DNA from: Paraphysomonas bandaiensis | Lineage: Eukaryota > Protista > Chrysophyceae | DNA length: 64,000 nucleotides | Direction: 5' to 3' | Assembly (NCBI GenBank): GCA_965644295.1 | Contig: CBFFRP010000078.1 | Location: 186,001-250,000, forward strand | Part shown: positions 13,753 to 26,701 of the stretch, piece after piece | Numbering within the stretch: the first letter of the stretch is position 1 | Layout of the letters: each line of letters opens with the position of its first letter | The notes under the pieces: model-generated | Seen by the model: only the letters and a program-made list of their open reading frames with translations | The model's database searches: none | What the model was told of the DNA's origin: nothing | Program-made: the position numbers and the translations under genes

Positions 13753-15416
13753 ATGACACAATGTGCATCACCAGGATGTGAAAATACGGCTACATTAGCC
13801 TGTCCAACATGCTTAAAGATAGGTATACCTCCAACTAGATTTTGTAGTCAGGAATGCTTTAAAAATAACTGGACGAATCATAAACAACTTCATAAAGCTA
13901 TTAAATTAGCTCGTCAAGAAGTGAAACAAGATCCATCTGCTGTTCCTAGTGAGTTTTATGGGTTTCAGTTCACTGGTCCACTGGTACGATACACACACAC
14001 GTAGACATACACATACATATATACACATATATATATATATATGCTATACTTACATCATGTATATAGCGTCCAGCTATGGTTACACCTAAACGTGAAGTAC
14101 CCCCTGAAATTCCTAGACCAGATTATGCGAATCATCCAACAGGCATTCCTGAAACTGAAATGCAAGAAAGGCGTACGAATAAATCGATTAGAGTATACAC
14201 ACCAGAAGAAATTCAAGGTATTAGGGAGGCGTGTAGAATTGGTCGGGAGGTATTGGATATAGCGGCTGCAGCTGTGCGTGTTGGAGTTACATGCGATGAG
14301 ATTGATAGAGTGGTGAGTTATAATAATTATGCGCATTCTCGAAGATGTGTGTTTTCTGTATACGTTCATCTTATCCTACGGTGTAGGTGCACGAGGCCAC
14401 AATTGAGCGCGGGGCGTATCCTTCTCCTCTCAATTATCATCAATTCCCGAAATCATTGGTATGTACCTTCACCTTCCGTTACGACTTCTGTATTACGTGT
14501 GCTGTGCCGTATACCATGAACTGAACATCTTTGCTTAGTGTACATCTGTAAATGAAGTGATCTGCCATGGAATCCCAGGTACCGTATTGATTTGAACTGG
14601 TTCGCTAGGGACGATCACATTTATGTCATTGCTTGTTTTTGTTGTTCATTGGGTATTAATGTTACATTGTTTTGTATTTTTTTCTTTATTTACTCGAGAT
14701 GCAACTTCCATTATACCTGAGCTGCACTGTATGACACGACAATTATTACGTATATTGTTTTCGTTTAGACGTTGCGTGATCGTATGTTTCATTATGTAGA
14801 TATGCGCGAGCTGAAGGACGGTGATATTTTGAACCTAGACATATCCGTGTATTACAACGGCTACCATGGTGACTTAAATGAAACCTTCTGTGTGGGTAAT
14901 GTGGATGAAGAGGGTCGTAAGCTAGTGGAGACAGCATATATGTGTCTCGCTAACGCAATTTCAATGGTCAAGCCAGGAACCCTTTATAGAGACTTTGGGA
15001 TGGCCATTTCTAAAACTGCGAAAGCGAATAAGTGCTCTGTTGTGCGAACTTTTTGCGGACATGGTATTGGTACTCTTTTCCATACTGTCCCAGATGTGCC
15101 ACATTACGCCAAAAACAAGGCCAAAGGTGTCTTGCAGCCGGGGCATGTGTTTACAATTGAACCAATGATTAATCTTGGTAAGTGCAAGATATGGACATGA
15201 AGAACATATCCAGTATTTCATTGTGTATATTATGTAGGTGGCTACCGTGATGTCCTTTGGCCTGATGGCTGGACAGACGTCACTGAAGATGGATCCAGGT
15301 CCGCTCAGTTTGAGCATACAATGGTAGTCACAGAGACGGGGTGTGAGCTTCTGACCGCACGAATTGGGGAACCCACTGACAGATTAGTTTGGAATCCCGA
15401 TACATTTTCGAAATAG
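13753..15416 (+). CDS. METAP1: Methionine aminopeptidase 1, diverged tandem copy 2
   Basis: Same exon structure as copy 1, with intact splice sites and all five metal ligands. Variants include [22 protein letters not shown] and WTDVT. Stop TAG at 15414-15416. Confidence 0.93.
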
Positions 15417-16599
15417 ATGTATGTGAGACCCAATCTTTATTCGTTTTTGAGTGACCATGACCTATGAGTACTTCTTAGCGATCACATTCTTAAAAATTTC
15501 TTCATGAAAATTTTTTTATTTCTGCTTGATTTGACCCAAAAATAGAGAATTCTAATAAACTGTTGGCTGATGAGCGTCAACTATTTCATAGTCAGTACTA
15601 AGAGATTAGATATGAAAGCAGCAGCCTTCATAATAATGTTGTAGCTGATGTGAATATAAATTAGCTAAACTTCAATGTTGAGTATCTTCAGGAGGGTATC
15701 GTTAAAATACTGAAGTTTTTATTGACAGTTCAAGATACTATCACTATCTACTCTAATAATTAACTCTTTCACTAAACGGTCATATTTCTTTTTATGGCAG
15801 AAAGCGGCTATTGAACGATTTAAAACGTAATAGTATTATCAAAAAAAGACAGGCGAAATAATTATGGTCCAGCTTCACCTTCCAGTAGCAGTAGTATTAC
15901 TTTAGAATGTCAACACAGCAGCATTTTATTATATGGTAACGCGGAAGCAAGCACATCTTAACAAGCAAACTAGATACCGTAGAATTAAACACTTGCATAG
16001 CTACGCTACAGAACCAATCAAGTTGAAAGAAGCGAAAGTTGCAGAATTATTACTTGCTGTCTCAATTTCAATTATTGCAATTAACTGCATTTATGCTTAG
16101 TCTGTAGCCTCTCCTCAATCAGATGTTGCCTCTTTTTCACCATATCACACTCCCTCTCGATTTTTGTTGCTGGACACACCAGATGACCCTCATATCCCAC
16201 CCCTGTCCAGCTATACACTATCTTGCATGTGCTCTCTACCGCTGGCTAAGACAGCAAAAGAGTCGATTTCGACGCTTCTTTACAGTAGGCCATAACCTTT
16301 TGCAAGACCTTCATCCACATACCTCCGAGCCACTTGGCACAATGCCTAAAGGAAGGCCACCAGATCGCCAAAATCTCAGCAGGGTATAGTACTGTTTCCC
16401 CTGGTTGCCGTGAGGTACATAAGGCAGTCCCCGAGGCAAATTGCACACAATGTATGTGTAGTCTTAAGCGTACCAGTGTTGTAGTGTAGTAGACTTAGAT
16501 CACTGCTTTCACTTATCATGCTGTACGTTGCACAACGTGTCCCCTACTACACATCTATCATATAGCGCCGGTGAGTCCCAGGACGCACGATCATGGCGA

Positions 16600-16810
16600 G
16601 CCTCATAACACACACTAAGAACGGAAGTGGTCGCATCTTGGTGCTTGCGGCGACGCAAAAGCAGCTTCTGTAGCGTTAAATAGTAGGATAAAAGAGTTTG
16701 TATTGATTAGTTACGGGTAGAGGTCTAAATAGTTTGTCTTGCATTCTTCTAGCCACTAATTGGTGCAGGCTTTCAACGCCTATTGCTAAATAATTAGACA
16801 TTCAAAAAGT
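16600..16810. repeat. Dispersed repeat (also at ~20406-20616, inverted at ~30610-30790, partial at ~46545-46650)
   Basis: GTGGTCGCATCTTGGTGCTTGCGGCGACGCAAAAGCAGCTTCTGTAGCGTTAAATAGTAGGATA...ACGCCTATTGCTAAATAATTAGACATTC recurs in diverged form at those positions. Confidence 0.7.
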
Positions 16811-17307
16811 CTTAATTGCAATTTGTTGGAATACGTATGGTTCTCTAAGATAGTACTGTAGAATACGTTAAATACAATGTGAAAAACAGTAATACGTAGT
16901 CAATAGTCAAAGGTGCTATATATGAATATGAAGTAAATTATCATCTTGTTCACAATAATGACATGTTAATATCCGAATCACGAGAGGCGAAGACTGGTTC
17001 GAATTAGATTAATCAAAGTATGCGGAGAAAGTGATTCAGAAGTTCGAATATATGTCATGGGGAATAGTAGCAAGAATAAGGACGCTCCGTTGCCATCGAA
17101 TGCAAGAACTACTAGCTGCAGAACGGGAACTTACATCAGAACAACAGGAGGACTAAGTCTCAAAGTTTCCGGACCGTAGTATTATTGGGGCAATCCTGTA
17201 TCTCGCACTACATACAAGACCAGATCTCGCTAATGACATTGAACTACTATAGAGATACGAGATACGTATGCATCTTGGCGGCTAGCAATAATTCATTTAT
17301 TGAATTA

Positions 17308-17400
17308 CTTAGTAACACTTACTTCTATTCACACTTAGTACTTAGTAACACTTACTTCTATTCACACTTAGTAACAACTTAGTAACACTTACTTCTACAT
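17308..17400. repeat. Short tandem repeat TTAGTAACACTTACTTCTATTCACAC, about 3 copies (duplicated at ~21114-21206; single copy at ~12244)
   Basis: Directly visible in the sequence. Confidence 0.85.
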
Positions 17401-17928
17401 TAGTATAGTATCAATTAATAATACTTGAGAGTTGATATGAATGAAGTAAATTATCATGTTTTACATGACAACGCAACATACATACAATTGTGTATGCAAT
17501 TATAATAAAGAGTCTATATCTAGTTTAATTACCATAAACTTTTCTCAACGATCGTAATTTTTAAAATGATCAATAGTCTATACAGTTAATAGCAATTGTT
17601 TAGTACTAAACTTCATTAACTGCGAATACAGCTACTTCAACTGTCCTTTCATTCCAGAGGCAACATTTCATGCGTAAAACATAAGTAATACTCTTGCGCA
17701 TATACTCATTACGGCTTTACCCTCAACTGAGAACAATTGAAGATCTTGATATTGCGAGTTTCATTGTACAAGTCCAAAAAAATCTAAAGAATTTACCTCA
17801 CTTGTTGTTATTACGCTACTCATGGGAACACTTAGTCGCAAGAGAGCTTTAAATATGCAATCGCTACCACTCAATCATGTACTGCACGAGAAAAAACTAC
17901 TAACTGGTACTTGAAACAGACAGCACAA

Positions 17929-19228
17929 TTACATCGCGTCACTATCATGTGCCGTGGCTGTGTTTTCGGTCAACAAACCACTTCCTTCAATATCACCCTT
18001 AGCATAGTCCTTGTATGTGATGTCACCCTTCCAGTACTTCTCGTAGCAGTACCAGGAAATAGCGATACCAATAATTACGGGAATGAAGCCATAGTAAAAG
18101 TGGTCCCAGTCATCATTACCAGCGATAAGAGGAGCCACGGTGAGGGAGATGATGCTCATGAGTTTAATAAGAATATTAAGGGCAGGGCCAGAAGTATCTT
18201 TGAAAGGGTCACCTACTGTGTCACCAACAACACAGGCTTTGTGAGTGTCAGTACCCTTTCCTCCGCATGCCTTCTCGATCTCAATGTACTTCTTGGAGTT
18301 ATCCCAAGCACCACCAGCGGTACTCATCATAATGGCAAGCATGGCGCCAGATGCAATAGATCCGCCAAGAAGCCCAGCAAGACAACGGGGTCCAACGAGG
18401 AATCCAATGAAGAGAGGAGAGAGAATGGCGTAAGCTCCGGGGAGAACCATTTCCTGAACCGATGAAACGGTACAGATCTCAACACAGCGCTCGGAGTCAG
18501 GCTCAGCGGTGCCTTCCATCAAACCAGGAATTGTATGGAACTGGCGGCGGACTTCCTCGATAATGGCAGCAGCAGCCTTTCTAACAGAAAGCATGGTAAG
18601 AGCAGCGAAGAGATAGGGAAGCATTGCACCGAAGAGCATTCCAGAAAATACAATAGGATCCCCCATGTTAATCTCGCCCTCAATATCGGCCTGCTTTTCA
18701 AACGCAGACAGAAGAGAAACAGCAGTGAGAACTGCAGAACCAATAGCGAAACCTTTGCCAGTAGCAGCAGTGGTGTTGCCAAGAGCATCCAGAGCATCGG
18801 TGGTGTCACGCACACGCTCGTCGAGCTCAGCCATCTCAGCAATACCACCAGCATTGTCAGCGACAGGTCCGTAAGCATCAGTTGCAAGGGTAACAGCCAG
18901 TGTGGAGAGCATACCGACAGCAGCAATGGCAATACCATATTCACCGGCGAGAGCATTGCAGCAAATAACGGTGAAAACAATCACAAAGATGGGTCCAACG
19001 CAAGAGATCATACCAACACCAAGACCCTGAATAATGACAGTGGCAGGACCGGTGAGACCAGCATCAGTGATTGACTTAACAGGCTTATAGGAGTAAGAAG
19101 TGAAGTATTCAGTCAACTCGCCAATGAGAACACCACAGAAAAGACCGAGAATGATGCATCCAAAGCACCTCCATCCGTCAGACTGACGGCCAGGGAAAAG
19201 TCCCCAGCAGATGAAGATAGAGAAGATA
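17929..19228 (-). pseudogene. 5'-truncated duplicate of the membrane pyrophosphatase (C-terminal ~430 aa only)
   Basis: Identical to 21735-23034 but begins at the duplication junction. It lacks [11 protein letters not shown] and DNVGDNVGD. The track start is a TTG; the first in-frame ATG is at 19011. Confidence 0.85.
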
Positions 19229-19231
19229 GAT

Positions 19232-22200
19232 AGACCCAATCTTTATTCGTTTTTGAGTGACCATGACCTATGAGTACTTCTTAGCGATCACATTCTTAAA
19301 AATTTCTTCATGAAAATTTTTTTATTTCTGCTTGATTTGACCCAAAAATAGAGAATTCTAATAAACTGTTGGCTGATGAGCGTCAACTATTTCATAGTCA
19401 GTACTAAGAGATTAGATATGAAAGCAGCAGCCTTCATAATAATGTTGTAGCTGATGTGAATATAAATTAGCTAAACTTCAATGTTGAGTATCTTCAGGAG
19501 GGTATCGTTAAAATACTGAAGTTTTTATTGACAGTTCAAGATACTATCACTATCTACTCTAATAATTAACTCTTTCACTAAACGGTCATATTTCTTTTTA
19601 TGGCAGAAAGCGGCTATTGAACGATTTAAAACGTAATAGTATTATCAAAAAAAGACAGGCGAAATAATTATGGTCCAGCTTCACCTTCCAGTAGCAGTAG
19701 TATTACTTTAGAATGTCAACACAGTAGTATTACTTTATATGGTAACGCGGAAGCAAGCACATCTTAACAAGCAAACTAGATACCGTAGAATTAAACACTT
19801 GCATAGCTACGCTACAGAACCAATCAAGTTGAAAGAAGCGAAAGTTGCAGAATTATTACTTGCTGTCTCAATTTCAATTATTGCAATTAACTGCATTTAT
19901 GCTTAGTCTGTAGCCTCTCCTCAATCAGATGTTGCCTCTTTTTCACCATATCACACTCCCTCTCGATTTTTGTTGCTGGACACACCAGATGACCCTCATA
20001 TCCCACCCCTGTCCAGCTATACACTATCTTGCATGTGCTCTCTACCGCTGGCTAAGACAGCAAAAGAGTCGATTTCGACGCTTCTTTACAGTAGGCCATA
20101 ACCTTTTGCAAGACCTTCATCCACATACCTCCGAGCCACTTGGCACAATGCCTAAAGGAAGGCCACCAGATCGCCAAAATCTCAGCAGGGTATAGTACTG
20201 TTTCCCCTGGTTGCCGTGAGGTACATAAGGCAGTCCCCGAGGCAAATTGCACACAATGTATGTGTAGTCTTAAGCGTACCAGTGTTGTAGTGTAGTAGAC
20301 TTAGATCACTGCTTTCACTTATCATGCTGTACGTTGCACAACGTGTCCCCTACTACACATCTATCATATAGCGCCGGTGAGTCCCAGGACGCACGATCAT
20401 GGCGAGCCTCATAACACACACTAAGAACGGAAGTGGTCGCATCTTGGTGCTTGCGGCGACGCAAAAGCAGCTTCTGTAGCGTTAAATAGTAGGATAAAAG
20501 AGTTTGTATTGATTAGTTACGGGTAGAGGTCTAAATAGTTTGTCTTGCATTCTTCTAGCCACTAATTGGTGCAGGCTTTCAACGCCTATTGCTAAATAAT
20601 TAGACATTCAAAAAGTCTTAATTGCAATTTGTTGGAATACGTATGGTTCTCTAAGATAGTACTGTAGAATACGTTAAATACAATGTGAAAAACAGTAATA
20701 CGTAGTCAATAGTCAAAGGTGCTATATATGAATATGAAGTAAATTATCATCTTGTTCACAATAATGACATGTTAATATCCGAATCACGAGAGGCGAAGAC
20801 TGGTTCGAATTAGATTAATCAAAGTATGCGGAGAAAGTGATTCAGAAGTTCGAATATATGTCATGGGGAATAGTAGCAAGAATAAGGACGCTCCGTTGCC
20901 ATCGAATGCAAGAACTACTAGCTGCAGAACGGGAACTTACATCAGAACAACAGGAGGACTAAGTCTCAAAGTTTCCGGACCGTAGTATTATTGGGGCAAT
21001 CCTGTATCTCGCACTACATACAAGACCAGATCTCGCTAATGACATTGAACTACTATAGAGATACGAGATACGTATGCATCTTGGCGGCTAGCAATAATTC
21101 ATTTATTGAATTACTTAGTAACACTTACTTCTATTCACACTTAGTACTTAGTAACACTTACTTCTATTCACACTTAGTAACAACTTAGTAACACTTACTT
21201 CTACATTAGTATAGTATCAATTAATAATACTTGAGAGTTGATATGAATGAAGTAAATTATCATGTTTTACATGACAACGCAACATACATACAATTGTGTA
21301 TGCAATTATAATAAAGAGTCTATATCTAGTTTAATTACCATAAACTTTTCTCAACGATCGTAATTTTTAAAATGATCAATAGTCTATACAGTTAATAGCA
21401 ATTGTTTAGTACTAAACTTCATTAACTGCGAATACAGCTACTTCAACTGTCCTTTCATTCCAGAGGCAACATTTCATGCGTAAAACATAAGTAATACTCT
21501 TGCGCATATACTCATTACGGCTTTACCCTCAACTGAGAACAATTGAAGATCTTGATATTGCGAGTTTCATTGTACAAGTCCAAAAAAATCTAAAGAATTT
21601 ACCTCACTTGTTGTTATTACGCTACTCATGGGAACACTTAGTCGCAAGAGAGCTTTAAATATGCAATCGCTACCACTCAATCATGTACTGCACGAGAAAA
21701 AACTACTAACTGGTACTTGAAACAGACAGCACAATTACATCGCGTCACTATCATGTGCCGTGGCTGTGTTTTCGGTCAACAAACCACTTCCTTCAATATC
21801 ACCCTTAGCATAGTCCTTGTATGTGATGTCACCCTTCCAGTACTTCTCGTAGCAGTACCAGGAAATAGCGATACCAATAATTACGGGAATGAAGCCATAG
21901 TAAAAGTGGTCCCAGTCATCATTACCAGCGATAAGAGGAGCCACGGTGAGGGAGATGATGCTCATGAGTTTAATAAGAATATTAAGGGCAGGGCCAGAAG
22001 TATCTTTGAAAGGGTCACCTACTGTGTCACCAACAACACAGGCTTTGTGAGTGTCAGTACCCTTTCCTCCGCATGCCTTCTCGATCTCAATGTACTTCTT
22101 GGAGTTATCCCAAGCACCACCAGCGGTACTCATCATAATGGCAAGCATGGCGCCAGATGCAATAGATCCGCCAAGAAGCCCAGCAAGACAACGGGGTCCA

Positions 22201-23034
22201 ACGAGGAATCCAATGAAGAGAGGAGAGAGAATGGCGTAAGCTCCGGGGAGAACCATTTCCTGAACCGATGAAACGGTACAGATCTCAACACAGCGCTCGG
22301 AGTCAGGCTCAGCGGTGCCTTCCATCAAACCAGGAATTGTATGGAACTGGCGGCGGACTTCCTCGATAATGGCAGCAGCAGCCTTTCTAACAGAAAGCAT
22401 GGTAAGAGCAGCGAAGAGATAGGGAAGCATTGCACCGAAGAGCATTCCAGAAAATACAATAGGATCCCCCATGTTAATCTCGCCCTCAATATCGGCCTGC
22501 TTTTCAAACGCAGACAGAAGAGAAACAGCAGTGAGAACTGCAGAACCAATAGCGAAACCTTTGCCAGTAGCAGCAGTGGTGTTGCCAAGAGCATCCAGAG
22601 CATCGGTGGTGTCACGCACACGCTCGTCGAGCTCAGCCATCTCAGCAATACCACCAGCATTGTCAGCGACAGGTCCGTAAGCATCAGTTGCAAGGGTAAC
22701 AGCCAGTGTGGAGAGCATACCGACAGCAGCAATGGCAATACCATATTCACCGGCGAGAGCATTGCAGCAAATAACGGTGAAAACAATCACAAAGATGGGT
22801 CCAACGCAAGAGATCATACCAACACCAAGACCCTGAATAATGACAGTGGCAGGACCGGTGAGACCAGCATCAGTGATTGACTTAACAGGCTTATAGGAGT
22901 AAGAAGTGAAGTATTCAGTCAACTCGCCAATGAGAACACCACAGAAAAGACCGAGAATGATGCATCCAAAGCACCTCCATCCGTCAGACTGACGGCCAGG
23001 GAAAAGTCCCCAGCAGATGAAGATAGAGAAGATA
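19232..23034. repeat. Tandem segmental duplication, unit 2
   Basis: Starts AGACCCAATC, matching 15426, after a 3-nt GAT filler. Identity with unit 1 ends at 23034, inside the full PPase gene. Confidence 0.97.
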
Positions 23035-24167
23035 ATAACCAAGAATGAAGCAGAGTGAACGGCCTTGTGGAGAGCATGCAGAAGGTCCTTCTGAGACGCG
23101 TCATCCTTGGTAGACACAAACCAATATCCAATCCAAGAGGAAAGAACACCAGCGCCAGCAAGCCAGAAAGGAAGAGCCATGAGAGCAACATCACCCTCAG
23201 CAAGAGTAACAGTTGCGATGATAGAACCAACGAAAGACTCGAAGAGATCAGCTCCCATACCAGCCACGTCACCAACATTATCACCGACATTATCAGCAAT
23301 GACAGCAGGATTACGGGGATCGTCCTCAGGAATACCCTGCTCAACCTTACCAACAAGATCAGCACCTACGTCAGCTGCCTTGGTGTAGATGCCACCAGTG
23401 ACACGGGCAAAAAGGGCAATCGAAGAAGCGCCGAATCCAAAACCAGCGAGAGATTCAGCAGCCCATTGGTACGTAACAGCTTTGTTAGGATAAGTGGCTG
23501 CATCCTCAGAGCTGATGTCGTCAGAGTCGCGACCGTAGCTCATAAGGATAAGGAAAATGGACACTCCAAAAAGGCCAAGTCCAACAACACAGAATCCCAT
23601 CACAGCACCTCCAGAGAAAGCAACACGGAGAGCAGCGTTGAGACCGAGTTTGTCGGCGGCATGGGTCGTACGTGTGTTGGCATCGGTGGCAACAATCATA
23701 CCAACCCAACCAGCAGTTGCAGATAAAAGGGCACCAGCAATAAAGCAACCTGCAACTCTGATACCATCCGTATCATCCGTACGAGTAGAAGATGCAGAAA
23801 ACATCAAGAGAAGAATAGCAGCAACACAGAATACAAAACCAGTAAGATATTTGTACTCTGTAATAAGAAAAGAACGTGATCCAGATGCAATAGAATCAGA
23901 TAACTTTTGCATCTTTTCACTTCCACGATCATATCCTTTTAATTTTTGTGTAAGGTATACACACATAAGTATAGAGATGGCTGCACCAACTAAAGAAAGA
24001 GAAACAATCTCATCCACACCCATATTGCCTGCAAGTTACATATAATAATATTAGAAGATTATAACAATATTAATACTTAGATTATACTTACAGGGAAATG
24101 TATCATAGTTCTCCTTTGAGCAGAAGTCTGACTTGGAGTCACCAAGTCCATCAAGAGTATATGTCAT
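21735..24167 (-). CDS. hppA: Membrane-integral ion-pumping pyrophosphatase, K+-dependent, with Na+-PPase-like gate residues (~789 aa, 2 exons)
   Basis: Contains [81 protein letters not shown] and [14 protein letters not shown], plus many hydrophobic helices. An upstream exon 24167-24092 (MTYTLDG...) splices in frame via GT-AG to 24028. Confidence 0.95.
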
Positions 24168-24958
24168 AGTTCAATCAGTATCTACACCAGATATTTCTAT
24201 GACAAACAATAATATTTTGCTAAATAAGATGCAAATATATAAAATAGAGTGTTATATAATATCTCGTTGCATAGATTGCATATATATACACAATCTATTG
24301 CACTGAAATCTAACAGCCACAAGATTTCAGATCCATGACATGCAAATGTGTGGTTTGGAATATGGCGATAGTATCTTAAAGAGGTAGAACTTTCTTCGAC
24401 ATGAAATTCGAATTTCGGTAGAGAAGAAAAGGAATACGTTGTATATATACACTGTATATATCTCTATATACATACCATCCAACTACGTATATATACTACA
24501 GCAAGCACTACCATATGCATGCTCTACATACACTGTAGAGGAGACAGTAGGAATTCCTATACCCCCAACACTACGAGTATACAGGCCGGTTGATCATCCG
24601 GCCTAGCCGAATGGGGCGAACTTAGATCGGCCTAAAATAGCCGAAGCTGGCCGGAACATCCAACACACTTCAATGAAGTATTTTTAAAAAAAAAATGAAG
24701 TGTATTTTTTTTTGAAACGAAGTGAAAGAAGTTGAAATTTAGATCACTTCAAAATTAAGTATGTATATATAAACGATTATATTGTGCCTACATTATACAG
24801 CAGTGTTTTAAAGGGTTATCTACCTTAAATATTAACTAGCTGTTCAATACTTACATATTCATATAGATCATACTAGCAAATACATGGTATGTATGTGGAC
24901 CATGTGGATTTGAATTGGAATTTAAAGTTCAGTTAATCATTACAAACTTATTATAATA

Positions 24959-26701
24959 ATGGAAGAACTTGTAGAGAAATTTAATGATGGAGAAGATGCT
25001 GTTATTCTATTGAATATTGAATCCATTACAAAATTTTCATATTATGAAACTAATATTAAAACAATTACTAAACTATGTCCACGTGTTTCAGTAATATGTC
25101 TATATAATTCCATGTCTCATGAAAGTGTACCATCATCTAATCATATCATTTTCCTTGATTTGACATATCATACACGTTCATTATATATGGAATATTTATT
25201 GGAACATACTAAACTTATATTTCTTGTTAATATGTCATTATGTGTATTCACTGAAGGCAAATATTCAAGTATATCAGAATGTATATTATCAAATTTATTA
25301 AAAGATTCAACGGATGTATATTGTTTACATTCAGTTGAAAATCTTTGTGCAATATTTAATACTGGTGGATTAACATATAAACATTCTGATGAAAAAGATT
25401 TATTATATCTAAGATCTCATTTGAAAGATATCTCTATTGTTCATATGGTACTCAATTATATATATATTAAATTGATATTATTAATATCTATGATCTATAT
25501 AGATTGGTGAACCTACTCAGGTTCTTTCATTGATGACTTGGGGATTAAATAATCTTAATTCATTAAAGTATGGCACTATGGTAAGCCCTGATATGTGCTA
25601 GTGATATGGGTTAATGCATCACTATTCAGATGAATACGAAACCTGAGCCAAGGGTCTTACCACACACGGAGACAAATGCGCTCGACAAGGCTTCCATTGA
25701 CAGGGTAGAAAGAGAGCACACTTTAATTAATATGTCTGAAATATTTGCACCACTATTTGCGAGTGTAAGTACTGGCTCTGTCATCGTGCCCAACTGAGTA
25801 TATACATAGACATTTGCGACGGCTAGAATAGAGGAGGAGTCTCACTCCGGATCAGTCAGCGAAGGTACAACAGATCCTTCATGTTGTGTTTGACCACTAA
25901 CATGAATGGTTTAGTACGTGAGGAGGGAGAATGGTCGAGATTTTCTCCTCATGCGAGATTTTCTCCTCATCAGAGTGGTAACTCAGACACTCACGTTGAT
26001 ATAAATGACGATAATGATGTGCCATTGCTGACTCTGCTGCCTGATGCCGCGGAGAAGCCCCGACCGCGGGCCCGTAAAAGACAAGCGGCGGAACCTCTCC
26101 ATCCTCCGAGACATCCTCGTACTCAGAAATATGGATCCTTTCTTCCTGGGCGGGTGGATATGTATATATTTTGTCTCAATAATTTCTTAGCTTTACTAAA
26201 CTCCTCTCTTTTAGGCATGATGAGAACTCTTTAGAAAGCACAGACTCAAGGGTGACTGGTGCGTGTACCCTAATATCTGTTTTGATCATCTAAGTTGGGA
26301 TCAGGTGTGCCTGTTGAGGAATCGTCCCAGTCATCGATGGCAACACTGGCTGACATTGCTGTGCATGTATCATCCACCCCGGAAAGGCCTTTTCAGCATA
26401 TTTTTGCAAGTACAAAGAATGTATGTGAAATATTATGCAATAGATATATATTGTTGCCTGATAATTTTTGTCTTACCAGTTGATATCTTCCCCTCAACGA
26501 GGCACTACATCTGCCACGCAATTATATAGTCAAGAGAGCGACGGAGAGGGTAGTTTTCCTCCGCTAAGTCAGATCAGTGCATTAACAGGCGATATAGATG
26601 GAATGTCTGAATTGGAAAGAACGAGTTCAACTGTTTCTCAAGGGAAGGAACTGAACCGCAAGTTTAGCTTTTTGAGTGGATTTTCGCAAGATAGTGTGTA
26701 G
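24959..26701 (+). CDS. Hypothetical multi-exon protein
   Basis: Successive plus-strand ORFs (24959, 25881, 26295, 26468) are separated by plausible short GT-AG introns. No domain recognised; exon joins are approximate. Confidence 0.5.

Follow-up and report, generated by a model that had tools for sequence, protein, structure and literature searches.

Is primary Na+ pumping by a membrane pyrophosphatase (mPPase) confined to prokaryotes, or could a eukaryotic cell carry such an enzyme as well? To our knowledge, only bacteria and archaea have been shown to possess pyrophosphatases that act as primary Na+ pumps. The question is raised by a gene in a 64,000-nucleotide stretch of genomic DNA (the window) from Paraphysomonas bandaiensis, a colourless, phagotrophic chrysophyte, whose product carries a Thermotoga-type ion gate. 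Judging from its sequence, a K+-dependent Na+-transporting pyrophosphatase is its most likely function, a reading that we hold with slightly better than even confidence.

Gene structure and expression

The features of the locus are collected in Table 1. The open reading frame at 21735-24023 (reverse strand) encodes 762 amino acids, and an upstream ATG at 24165-24167 is joined to it by splicing. The RNA of a culture run (X3) and that of a marine polyA metatranscriptome (X12) yielded contigs that skip 63 nt between 24027 and 24091, and a DNA contig (X4) runs unspliced across the intron stretch. The spliced product is identical to the MMETSP Paraphysomonas transcript protein P0121. Together with the RNA contigs, this identity confirms the single intron that an earlier reading, made from the letters of the sequence, had proposed (the sequence-only reading). 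Transcripts of the gene were present in culture RNA as well as in marine polyA metatranscriptomes of several studies.

A contaminant or a non-functional relic is a very improbable account of this gene. It is favoured by a truncated tandem copy 3.8 kb downstream of the gene and by a degenerate AVP1-like copy (C412) elsewhere in the genome, but is contradicted by the intact family-invariant residues, the spliced polyA RNA and the exact match to the Paraphysomonas transcriptome, and the flanks of the gene are AT-rich and eukaryotic.

Table 1 Features of the mPPase locus, in window coordinates.
Feature	Position	Strand	Remarks
mPPase gene	21735-24167	-	Two exons, 63-nt GT..AG intron, 789-aa spliced product
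Exon 1 (76 nt)	24092..24167	-	Start codon 24165-24167; 25 residues and first base of next codon
Single intron (63 nt, GTAAGT...GCAG)	24029..24091	-	X3 and X12 RNA contigs show the joint 24027/24091
Exon 2	21735..24028	-	Entire PF03030 domain, extra helix, tail and stop codon 21735-21737
Approximate mRNA span with 5' and 3' UTRs	21606..24247	-	RNA contig coverage (X3 records 20-22, X12 records 4-7)
Ser227 (S5.43), helix-5 partner of gate Glu	23424..23426	-	Family alignment
Helix 6 gate segment, 19 residues	23214..23270	-	D286 (6.50), E289 (6.53, codon 23238-23240), S290 (6.54), G293 (6.57)
GNTTAA, K+-dependence determinant	22569..22586	-	A511 (12.46), then G514 (12.49)
Helix 16 gate segment ALNILIKL	21966..21989	-	N708 (16.46), K712 (16.50)
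Extra hydrophobic helix, 17th TM, residues ~734-756	21837..21905	-	AF2 helix 734-756, block pLDDT 82-94
Hydrophilic C-terminal tail, 33 residues	21738..21836	-	YKDY and E-x-x-x-L-L motifs
Truncated duplicate of the gene (3' 1.3 kb)	17929..19239	-	436-aa ORF, identical C-terminal half

Family membership and fold

The window protein scores 848 bits against PF03030, the match spanning positions 2-644 of the 645 in the profile, and all invariant Asp, Lys and Asn columns of a 46-sequence alignment are present. Along with the spliced intron, these results uphold the earlier identification of the product as a eukaryotic membrane pyrophosphatase. Among the NCBIfam models, NF001960 ranks first with 847 bits, 78 bits above the V-type H+ model TIGR01104 (769 bits), which is itself the first-ranking model for the genome's own AVP1-type paralog and for P0203. 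NF001960 is also the top model for the Clostridia-type mPPases, which share 50-53% identity with the window protein.

The AF2 model of the window protein (pLDDT 89.7, pTM 0.91) adopts the mPPase fold and matches both the Vigna radiata H+-PPase (4A01) and the K+-dependent Na+-PPase of Thermotoga maritima (4AV3, 5LZQ), with which it has the PF03030 fold in common. The TM-score is 0.83 for Vigna vs 0.81 for Thermotoga (range for Thermotoga 0.80-0.81), and the bit scores follow the same order, with 552 bits for Vigna, the best of the PDB matches, vs 512 bits for Thermotoga. A Foldseek comparison with the PDB did not tell Na+ and H+ templates apart for this protein, the ESM Atlas returned generic H_PPase clusters only, and an Rfam search of window positions 15000-25000 gave no match.

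Residues of the ion gate and the K+ site

In the family alignment, the window protein carries the nine-residue string S5.43 D6.50 E6.53 S6.54 G6.57 A12.46 G12.49 N16.46 K16.50. The motifs quoted in the sequence-only reading, namely the helix 6 segment, GNTTAA and ALNILIKL, all lie where it had placed them, and a 13-residue segment and GFGFGAS are likewise present in the open reading frame 21735-24023. The segment GNTTAATG supplies A511 and G514, the Ala at 12.46 and Gly at 12.49 of the K+-dependent subfamily; K+-independent enzymes have Lys at 12.46 and Thr at 12.49. All elements of the Na+-PPase gate (E6.53, D6.50, S6.54, K16.50, S5.43 and Asp or Asn at 16.46) are found, as E289, D286, S290, K712, S227 and N708. 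The AVP1/Vigna-type gate, which has its Glu at 6.57, is not: the window protein has G293 at this position and its Glu at 6.53. The gate is thus of the Thermotoga type and not of the plant type, as had been proposed. E289 aligns with E246 of T. maritima through the family alignment and P0212, a close Thermotoga-type relative that served as a proxy (824 bits to 4av3, with the alignment reading GADLLES).

Of the 207 proteins in the eukaryote clade described below, 205 keep all nine of these gate and K+-site residues, and the string is therefore not a product of chance. The T. maritima Na+-PPase shares A12.46, G12.49, D6.50, E6.53, S6.54, K16.50 and S5.43 with the window protein at an overall identity of 39-40%. 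The two differ at 16.46, which is Asp in Thermotoga and Asn in the window protein; the string of P0212 reads SDESGAGDK, that of the window protein SDESGAGNK. The Clostridia-type enzyme of an Anaerostipes MAG (L015) has a gate and K+-site string identical to that of the window protein, and the A. caccae enzyme, from the same genus, has reportedly been characterised as a Na+-PPase. However, the Clostridia-type enzymes end 14-27 residues past the gate Lys of helix 16, without an extra helix, and in the tree another branch lies closer to the window protein. The Vigna/AVP1 type (4A01; 43-44% identity) resembles the window protein in being K+-dependent (A12.46) and in having N16.46, but it differs in its Glu at 6.57, its Gly at 6.53, the lack of a 17th helix and its membership of a separate 100/100 clade, to which the AVP1-type paralog on contig C451 belongs.

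Phylogenetic position

The main maximum-likelihood (ML) tree comprised 54 rows, with the window protein represented by P0001, which differs from it at two positions outside the gate (I358V and E542Q). The window protein falls inside a eukaryote clade (100/99), apart from the AVP1-type clade (100/100), the two being separate at 100% bootstrap each. A constraint placing the whole eukaryote clade inside the AVP1-type clade was rejected (dlnL 91.5, AU p=0.0003). The sequence-only reading had named this very placement as evidence against itself, and the tree leaves it standing in this respect. AU tests that moved just 14 rows of the clade in an 83-row quick tree did not reject a grouping with the E6.57 enzymes (p=0.39 and 0.17); they are superseded by the tests on the whole clade. 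The window protein also lies outside the E5.43 branch, in a tree whose K+-dependent backbone is unresolved and in which characterised enzymes are present by proxy only (P0212 for Thermotoga, L015 for Anaerostipes; Carboxydothermus hydrogenoformans is absent).

The sisters of the eukaryote clade in the ML tree are bacterial E6.53 enzymes (96/80, 91/93). The AU test, however, also allows the AVP1-type clade as the sister group (p=0.093), and the single intron, on account of which the sequence-only reading had hinted at a possible prokaryotic origin, is a weak argument for it. A word search with P0227 found Deltaproteobacteria and no Carboxydothermus, and cluster look-ups gave mostly metatranscriptome or MAG proteins. 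Scanning prokaryote genomes with peptide patterns yielded 80 loci, many of them K+-independent, which do not make up a fair sample of nearest neighbours since probably only the AEMAELDE pattern is shared outside the clade.

The hosts of the clade are stramenopiles, cryptophytes, Ancyromonas and other marine protists. A profile search with A2 contributed nothing beyond Rhodomonas, a bicosoecid and an amphipod transcriptome. Diatom proteins of Cylindrotheca, Seminavis and Nitzschia share 66-70% identity with the window protein. A branch without the gate Glu sits within the same clade.

An extra C-terminal helix

Beyond the T. maritima enzyme, the window protein is eukaryotic, with an ion specificity that is predicted only, and possesses a 27-residue N-terminal extension, a 17th helix and a 33-residue tail. 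An extra hydrophobic C-terminal helix was found in all 21 scorable representatives of the eukaryote clade and in 195 of 206 further members; the bacterial, Thermotoga-type and E6.57 relatives that were sampled all lack it. This helix would place the tail in the cytosol, where a role in sorting is conceivable. We tentatively suggest, at somewhat less than even confidence, that the clade may form a family of primary Na+ pumps that are driven by PPi and occur across the eukaryotes, in which the 17th helix puts the tail on the cytosolic side for possible sorting or regulatory signals. Many marine protists would then run a PPi-powered Na+ circuit beside their H+-PPases, and the Glu-less branch would represent a further undescribed functional type.

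Predicted ion specificity

Since the gate is of the Thermotoga type (D286, E289 at 6.53, S290, N708, K712, S227), Na+ binding and export are the most likely activity. The enzyme would be a homodimer, each subunit having 16 helices and the extra one, and would hydrolyse Mg2-PPi at the cytosolic face. Na+ bound at the gate would leave the cytosol, either for the lumen of an endomembrane compartment or for the outside of the cell, and at very low cytosolic Na+ the enzyme would carry H+ instead, as bacterial Na+-PPases do. The transported ion, the activation by K+, the dimer, the cytosolic tail and the target membrane are all elements that we infer. Transport of Na+ or Na+/H+ is what published models expect of a K+-dependent enzyme with E6.53 (PMC9408878; PMC10897367). 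Na+-PPases carry H+ below ~5-10 mM Na+ (PMC9408878, PMC10897367), which may be relevant to the eukaryotic cytosol and weakens the Na+ reading.

Observations on the window protein and its clade also count against the Na+ reading: N16.46, as in Vigna, the slightly higher Vigna score, the Glu-less branch and the AU tests with 14 rows. The literature adds the enzyme of C. hydrogenoformans, a K+-dependent H+-PPase with E6.53 (Li 2016, PMC5150537; Holmes 2019, PMC6882861, Table 1). Moving the Glu from 6.57 to 6.53 does not yield a Na+ pump (PMC6882861), so other determinants of selectivity must exist, and Strauss 2024 (PMC10897367) argues that selectivity arises from how S5.43 and E6.53 act together with helix 5 and not from the position of the Glu alone.

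The window protein could, with a lower probability that we still take seriously, be a K+-dependent pump for H+ only despite its E6.53, acidifying a compartment other than that of the AVP1-type paralog, for example an acidocalcisome, food vacuole or contractile vacuole. Such E6.53 K+-dependent H+-PPases are listed in PMC5150537 and in Table 1 of PMC6882861. E6.53 is also found in K+-independent H+ pumps, with helix 5 geometry setting the selectivity (PMC10897367), and every eukaryotic mPPase characterised so far is an H+ pump (PMC11486809); the Asn at 16.46 and the permitted sister relation to the E6.57 clade point the same way. However, the K+-dependent E6.53 examples that the consulted papers name are T. 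maritima, which transports Na+, and Bacteroides vulgatus and Clostridium leptum, which transport Na+ and H+ (PMC6882861 Table 1; PMC10897367 Table 1). The strict conservation of the gate string and the presence of E6.57 and K+-independent H+ pumps in the same genome also argue against an H+-only function.

A pump that still moves H+ along with Na+ when Na+ is high, as the enzymes of B. vulgatus and C. leptum do, is improbable in our estimate. Dual pumps are recognised by a four-residue signature of Thr, Phe, Asp and Met or by falling in one of two known clades. These dual Na+,H+-PPases share the A12.46, G12.49 and E6.53 pattern (PMC10897367 Table 1), and a metatranscriptome relative within the clade (P0148) is labelled at its source 'Na+/H+-translocating membrane pyrophosphatase', an automatic name only, but the clade does not adjoin the sole Bacteroidota group sampled (P0183/P0176) in the trees.

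The Na+-transporting reading, which we prefer, is less new for eukaryotes than the sequence-only reading had assumed, since putative Na+-PPase orthologs of marine protists were already mentioned in 2011 and 2020-21 (PMC7438732, PMC8034386, PMC3237598). For these published candidates, which include prasinophyte sequences, the prediction and the kind of evidence are the same as for the window protein; the colourless, phagotrophic host of the latter is unlike theirs. In the papers searched, we found no report of a eukaryotic enzyme of this kind tested for its transported ion, nor a biochemical validation of any of the published candidates. The window gene is well suited to such a test, being expressed, full-length, interrupted by one intron and derived from a cultured marine protist; close diatom orthologs exist in transformable species, and the AVP1-type paralog of the same genome offers an internal control. 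If it does pump Na+, eukaryotic cell biology would gain a primary Na+ pump of a new kind, and the result would bear on the salt handling and PPi economy of abundant marine grazers and algae. If it transports H+ only, the rule that a gate Glu at 6.53 predicts Na+ pumping would have a counter-example among eukaryotes.

Paralogs and a tandem copy

The genome of P. bandaiensis further encodes the AVP1-type (E6.57) gene on contig C451, K+-independent genes, which read GNVTKAIT, and a Glu-less gene. With E6.57 and K+-independent genes beside the one described here, its pumps need not be redundant. The truncated copy downstream of the gene was created by an apparent exact tandem duplication of 3806 bp (15408-19243 = 19214-23049).

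Gene structure and expression

The pyrophosphatase is encoded by a two-exon gene on the minus strand at 21735-24167 of the window. Every residue of its spliced product (789 aa) matches P0121, a transcript protein from MMETSP1103 (taxid 36769), the source of which, Paraphysomonas, is a colourless chrysophyte. RNA contigs from culture run X3 and from X12, a marine polyA metatranscriptome, skip the 63-nt intron, while a DNA contig across it is unspliced. RNA contigs span about 21606-24247, and the gene's stretch is found in marine metatranscriptomes of several studies, indicating that the organism is marine and expresses the gene in the sea. In searches and trees, the window protein was represented by P0001, which differs from it at two non-gate positions (I358V and E542Q) and probably derives from a near-identical gene copy located on C108.

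Features of the pyrophosphatase gene and of the other family loci in the assembly
Feature	Location	Strand	Details
Long ORF	21735-24023	-	encodes 762 aa
Start codon ATG	24165-24167	-	upstream of the long ORF; opens a 76-nt exon ending at the GTAAGT donor
Intron, 63 nt	24029-24091	-	GTAAGT donor, GCAG end, in-frame join
Near-identical copy of the window gene	contig C108
AVP1-type gene	contig C451		helix 6 GADLFGSFAES; K+ determinant GNTTAA
Two K+-independent genes	contigs C182, C275		GNVTKA; many introns
Degenerate AVP1-like copy	contig C412		segments missing
Short fragment	contig C146
Glu-less, K+-dependent gene (L003, L093)	contig C150:394838-396770		no Glu at 5.43, 6.53 or 6.57; helix 6 GADLFSSFVGS

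A 3806-bp unit is repeated in tandem (15408-19243 and 19214-23049, 99.3-100% identity), copying the 3' 1.3 kb of the gene and leaving a truncated 436-aa ORF at 17929-19239 on the minus strand; this exact duplication may be genuine or may stem from the assembly. Over about 19735-21230, contigs of a DNA run (X4) reach a summed depth of 10^4-10^5, against about 50 over the gene, and X3 RNA contigs match 20296-20856 within this region. It lacks both an Rfam match and a long ORF, and is probably a dispersed high-copy repeat.

Gate residues and predicted ion specificity

PF03030 matches the whole length of the protein (848 bits). In an alignment of 355 family members to a profile, nine positions were compared under the Ballesteros-Weinstein scheme customary for these pumps, with T. 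maritima as anchor through its close relative P0212 (824 bits to chain 4av3). In the printed alignment of these two, which reads GADLLES, the Glu is numbered nine beyond the native position, as expected for a tagged chain. The window protein carries S227 (5.43), D286 (6.50), E289 (6.53), S290 (6.54), G293 (6.57), A511 (12.46), G514 (12.49), N708 (16.46) and K712 (16.50), and all strings quoted in the sequence-only reading were recovered at their coordinates.

In K+-dependent enzymes, as seen in TmPPase with imidodiphosphate, the Na+ site is formed by E6.53 together with D6.50, S6.54 and D/N16.46 (PMC5150537), and, according to the model of Strauss et al. (2024), K+-dependent pumps combining E6.53 with S5.43 should transport Na+ or Na+/H+ (PMC10897367). 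From these residues and this model, we predict with moderate confidence that the window protein is a K+-dependent, Na+-transporting pyrophosphatase. Overall similarity does not discriminate (Vigna 552 bits, TM-score 0.83; Thermotoga 512 bits, 0.81). The C. hydrogenoformans enzyme, absent from our trees, is listed as a K+-dependent H+-PPase with E6.53 (Li 2016, Holmes 2019; PMC5150537, PMC6882861), and Vigna also has Asn at 16.46, both of which would fit a pump for H+ only. Conservation of the nine residues in 205 of the 207 eukaryote-clade proteins, which shows the pattern to be under selection, speaks against such a pump, and we regard it as unlikely. The reverse mutation, moving Glu from 6.57 to 6.53, did not create a Na+ pump (PMC6882861). 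Na+-PPases transport H+ once Na+ falls below about 5-10 mM (PMC9408878, PMC10897367). That the window protein is a dual Na+,H+ pump appears improbable. Glu occupies both 6.53 and 6.57 in the prokaryote-type, K+-dependent P0195, P0228 and P0278, with the strings SDESEAGNK and TDESEAGNK.

Other pyrophosphatases in the genome

Searching the 62.5-Mb assembly in six frames revealed about eight membrane pyrophosphatase loci, whose types were assigned from motif scans and stitched exon models (outside the window and C150: L001, L004-L012 and L094-L098, on contigs C108, C451, C182, C275, C412 and C146). The retention of a plant-type proton pump beside the window gene argues for different jobs. The Glu-less C150 gene falls, with the relatives P0165 and P0241, within the same eukaryote clade as the window protein; we are aware of no Glu-less membrane pyrophosphatase that has been characterised.

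A eukaryotic clade with an additional C-terminal helix

We combined the window clade, 150 representatives of 50%-identity clusters, named prokaryote loci and the genome's own paralogs, and built three trees, which agreed: FastTree on 269 rows, IQ-TREE in a quick run on 83 rows and, with more care, on 54 rows (LG+C20 by PMSF). In the 54-row tree, the K+-independent enzymes form a single clade (100/99), as do the E6.57 enzymes including the C451 paralog (100/100). A third clade (100/99), of 16 eukaryote rows, contains both the window protein and the C150 gene. The maximum-likelihood sister of this clade is an Anaerolineae MAG (96/80), and the next branch out is a set of bacterial E6.53 enzymes that includes Spirochaetaceae and Poribacteria (91/93); the remaining K+-dependent backbone is unresolved. 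In agreement with this separation, NF001960 is the top-scoring profile for the window protein and further clade members, as for the Anaerostipes enzyme, and TIGR01104 is the top-scoring one for AVP1-type proteins.

Placement inside the AVP1-type clade, named beforehand as an outcome that would overturn the Na+-pump proposal, was rejected when the whole eukaryote clade was forced there (cost 91.5 log-likelihood units, p-AU 0.0003). Forcing the two clades to be sisters cost 30.1 units and was not rejected (p=0.093), and earlier AU tests shifting only 14 of the eukaryote-clade rows were non-significant (p=0.39 and 0.17); all tested groups were named after the first tree had been inspected, which weakens the formal p-values. 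The clade may have arisen by bacterial transfer or by old eukaryotic paralogy with AVP1. The single intron, previously called compatible with a prokaryote-derived origin, is real and says little on this point.

The extra helix, being independent of the substitution model, also supports the clade. The chain runs 57-200 residues past the helix-16 gate Lys in all 21 scorable clade representatives (195/206 in a larger set), first as a strongly hydrophobic stretch and then as a hydrophilic tail. No such stretch was found in the sampled bacterial sisters, Clostridia, Thermotoga-type or E6.57 proteins, and all of these but one end at most 31 residues after this Lys. An AlphaFold2 model (46-row alignment; pLDDT 89.7, pTM 0.91) places a confident helix at residues 734-756. 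Both termini of the solved 16-helix pumps are non-cytosolic, so a 17th helix should put the tail in the cytosol, where its YKDY and ExxxLL motifs might act in sorting. Reviews quote 15-17 helices for the family (PMC6882861), so that a helix count of 17 has precedent.

The clade is eukaryotic, because its contigs are metatranscriptome pieces of mRNA size, the Glu-less P0165 adjoins a VPS13 gene, and the named members are eukaryotes (diatoms, Triparma, Paraphysomonas imperforata, Rhodomonas, a bicosoecid and Ancyromonas).

The idea of eukaryotic Na+-PPases is already published, with Chan et al. among the sources: probable orthologs were described in prasinophytes, with validation under way (Perez-Castineira and Serrano 2020; PMC7438732), and a 2021 editorial credits marine photosynthetic protists with Na+-PPases (PMC8034386). 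In the searchable literature, no eukaryotic member turned up that had been tested biochemically. The window gene belongs to a known kind that is itself still only predicted. What our analysis contributes is a heterotrophic chrysophyte in which such a gene is verified and expressed, a single genome that sets it against three other pump types, and a 100%-supported eukaryote clade with a 17th helix and a Glu-less branch.

Three close relatives are filed under Symbiodinium microadriaticum (P0050, 89% identical, partial), Mesodinium pulex (P0129) and the amphipod Hirondellea gigas (P0525), but more likely come from prey or contaminants than from the genomes of these species.
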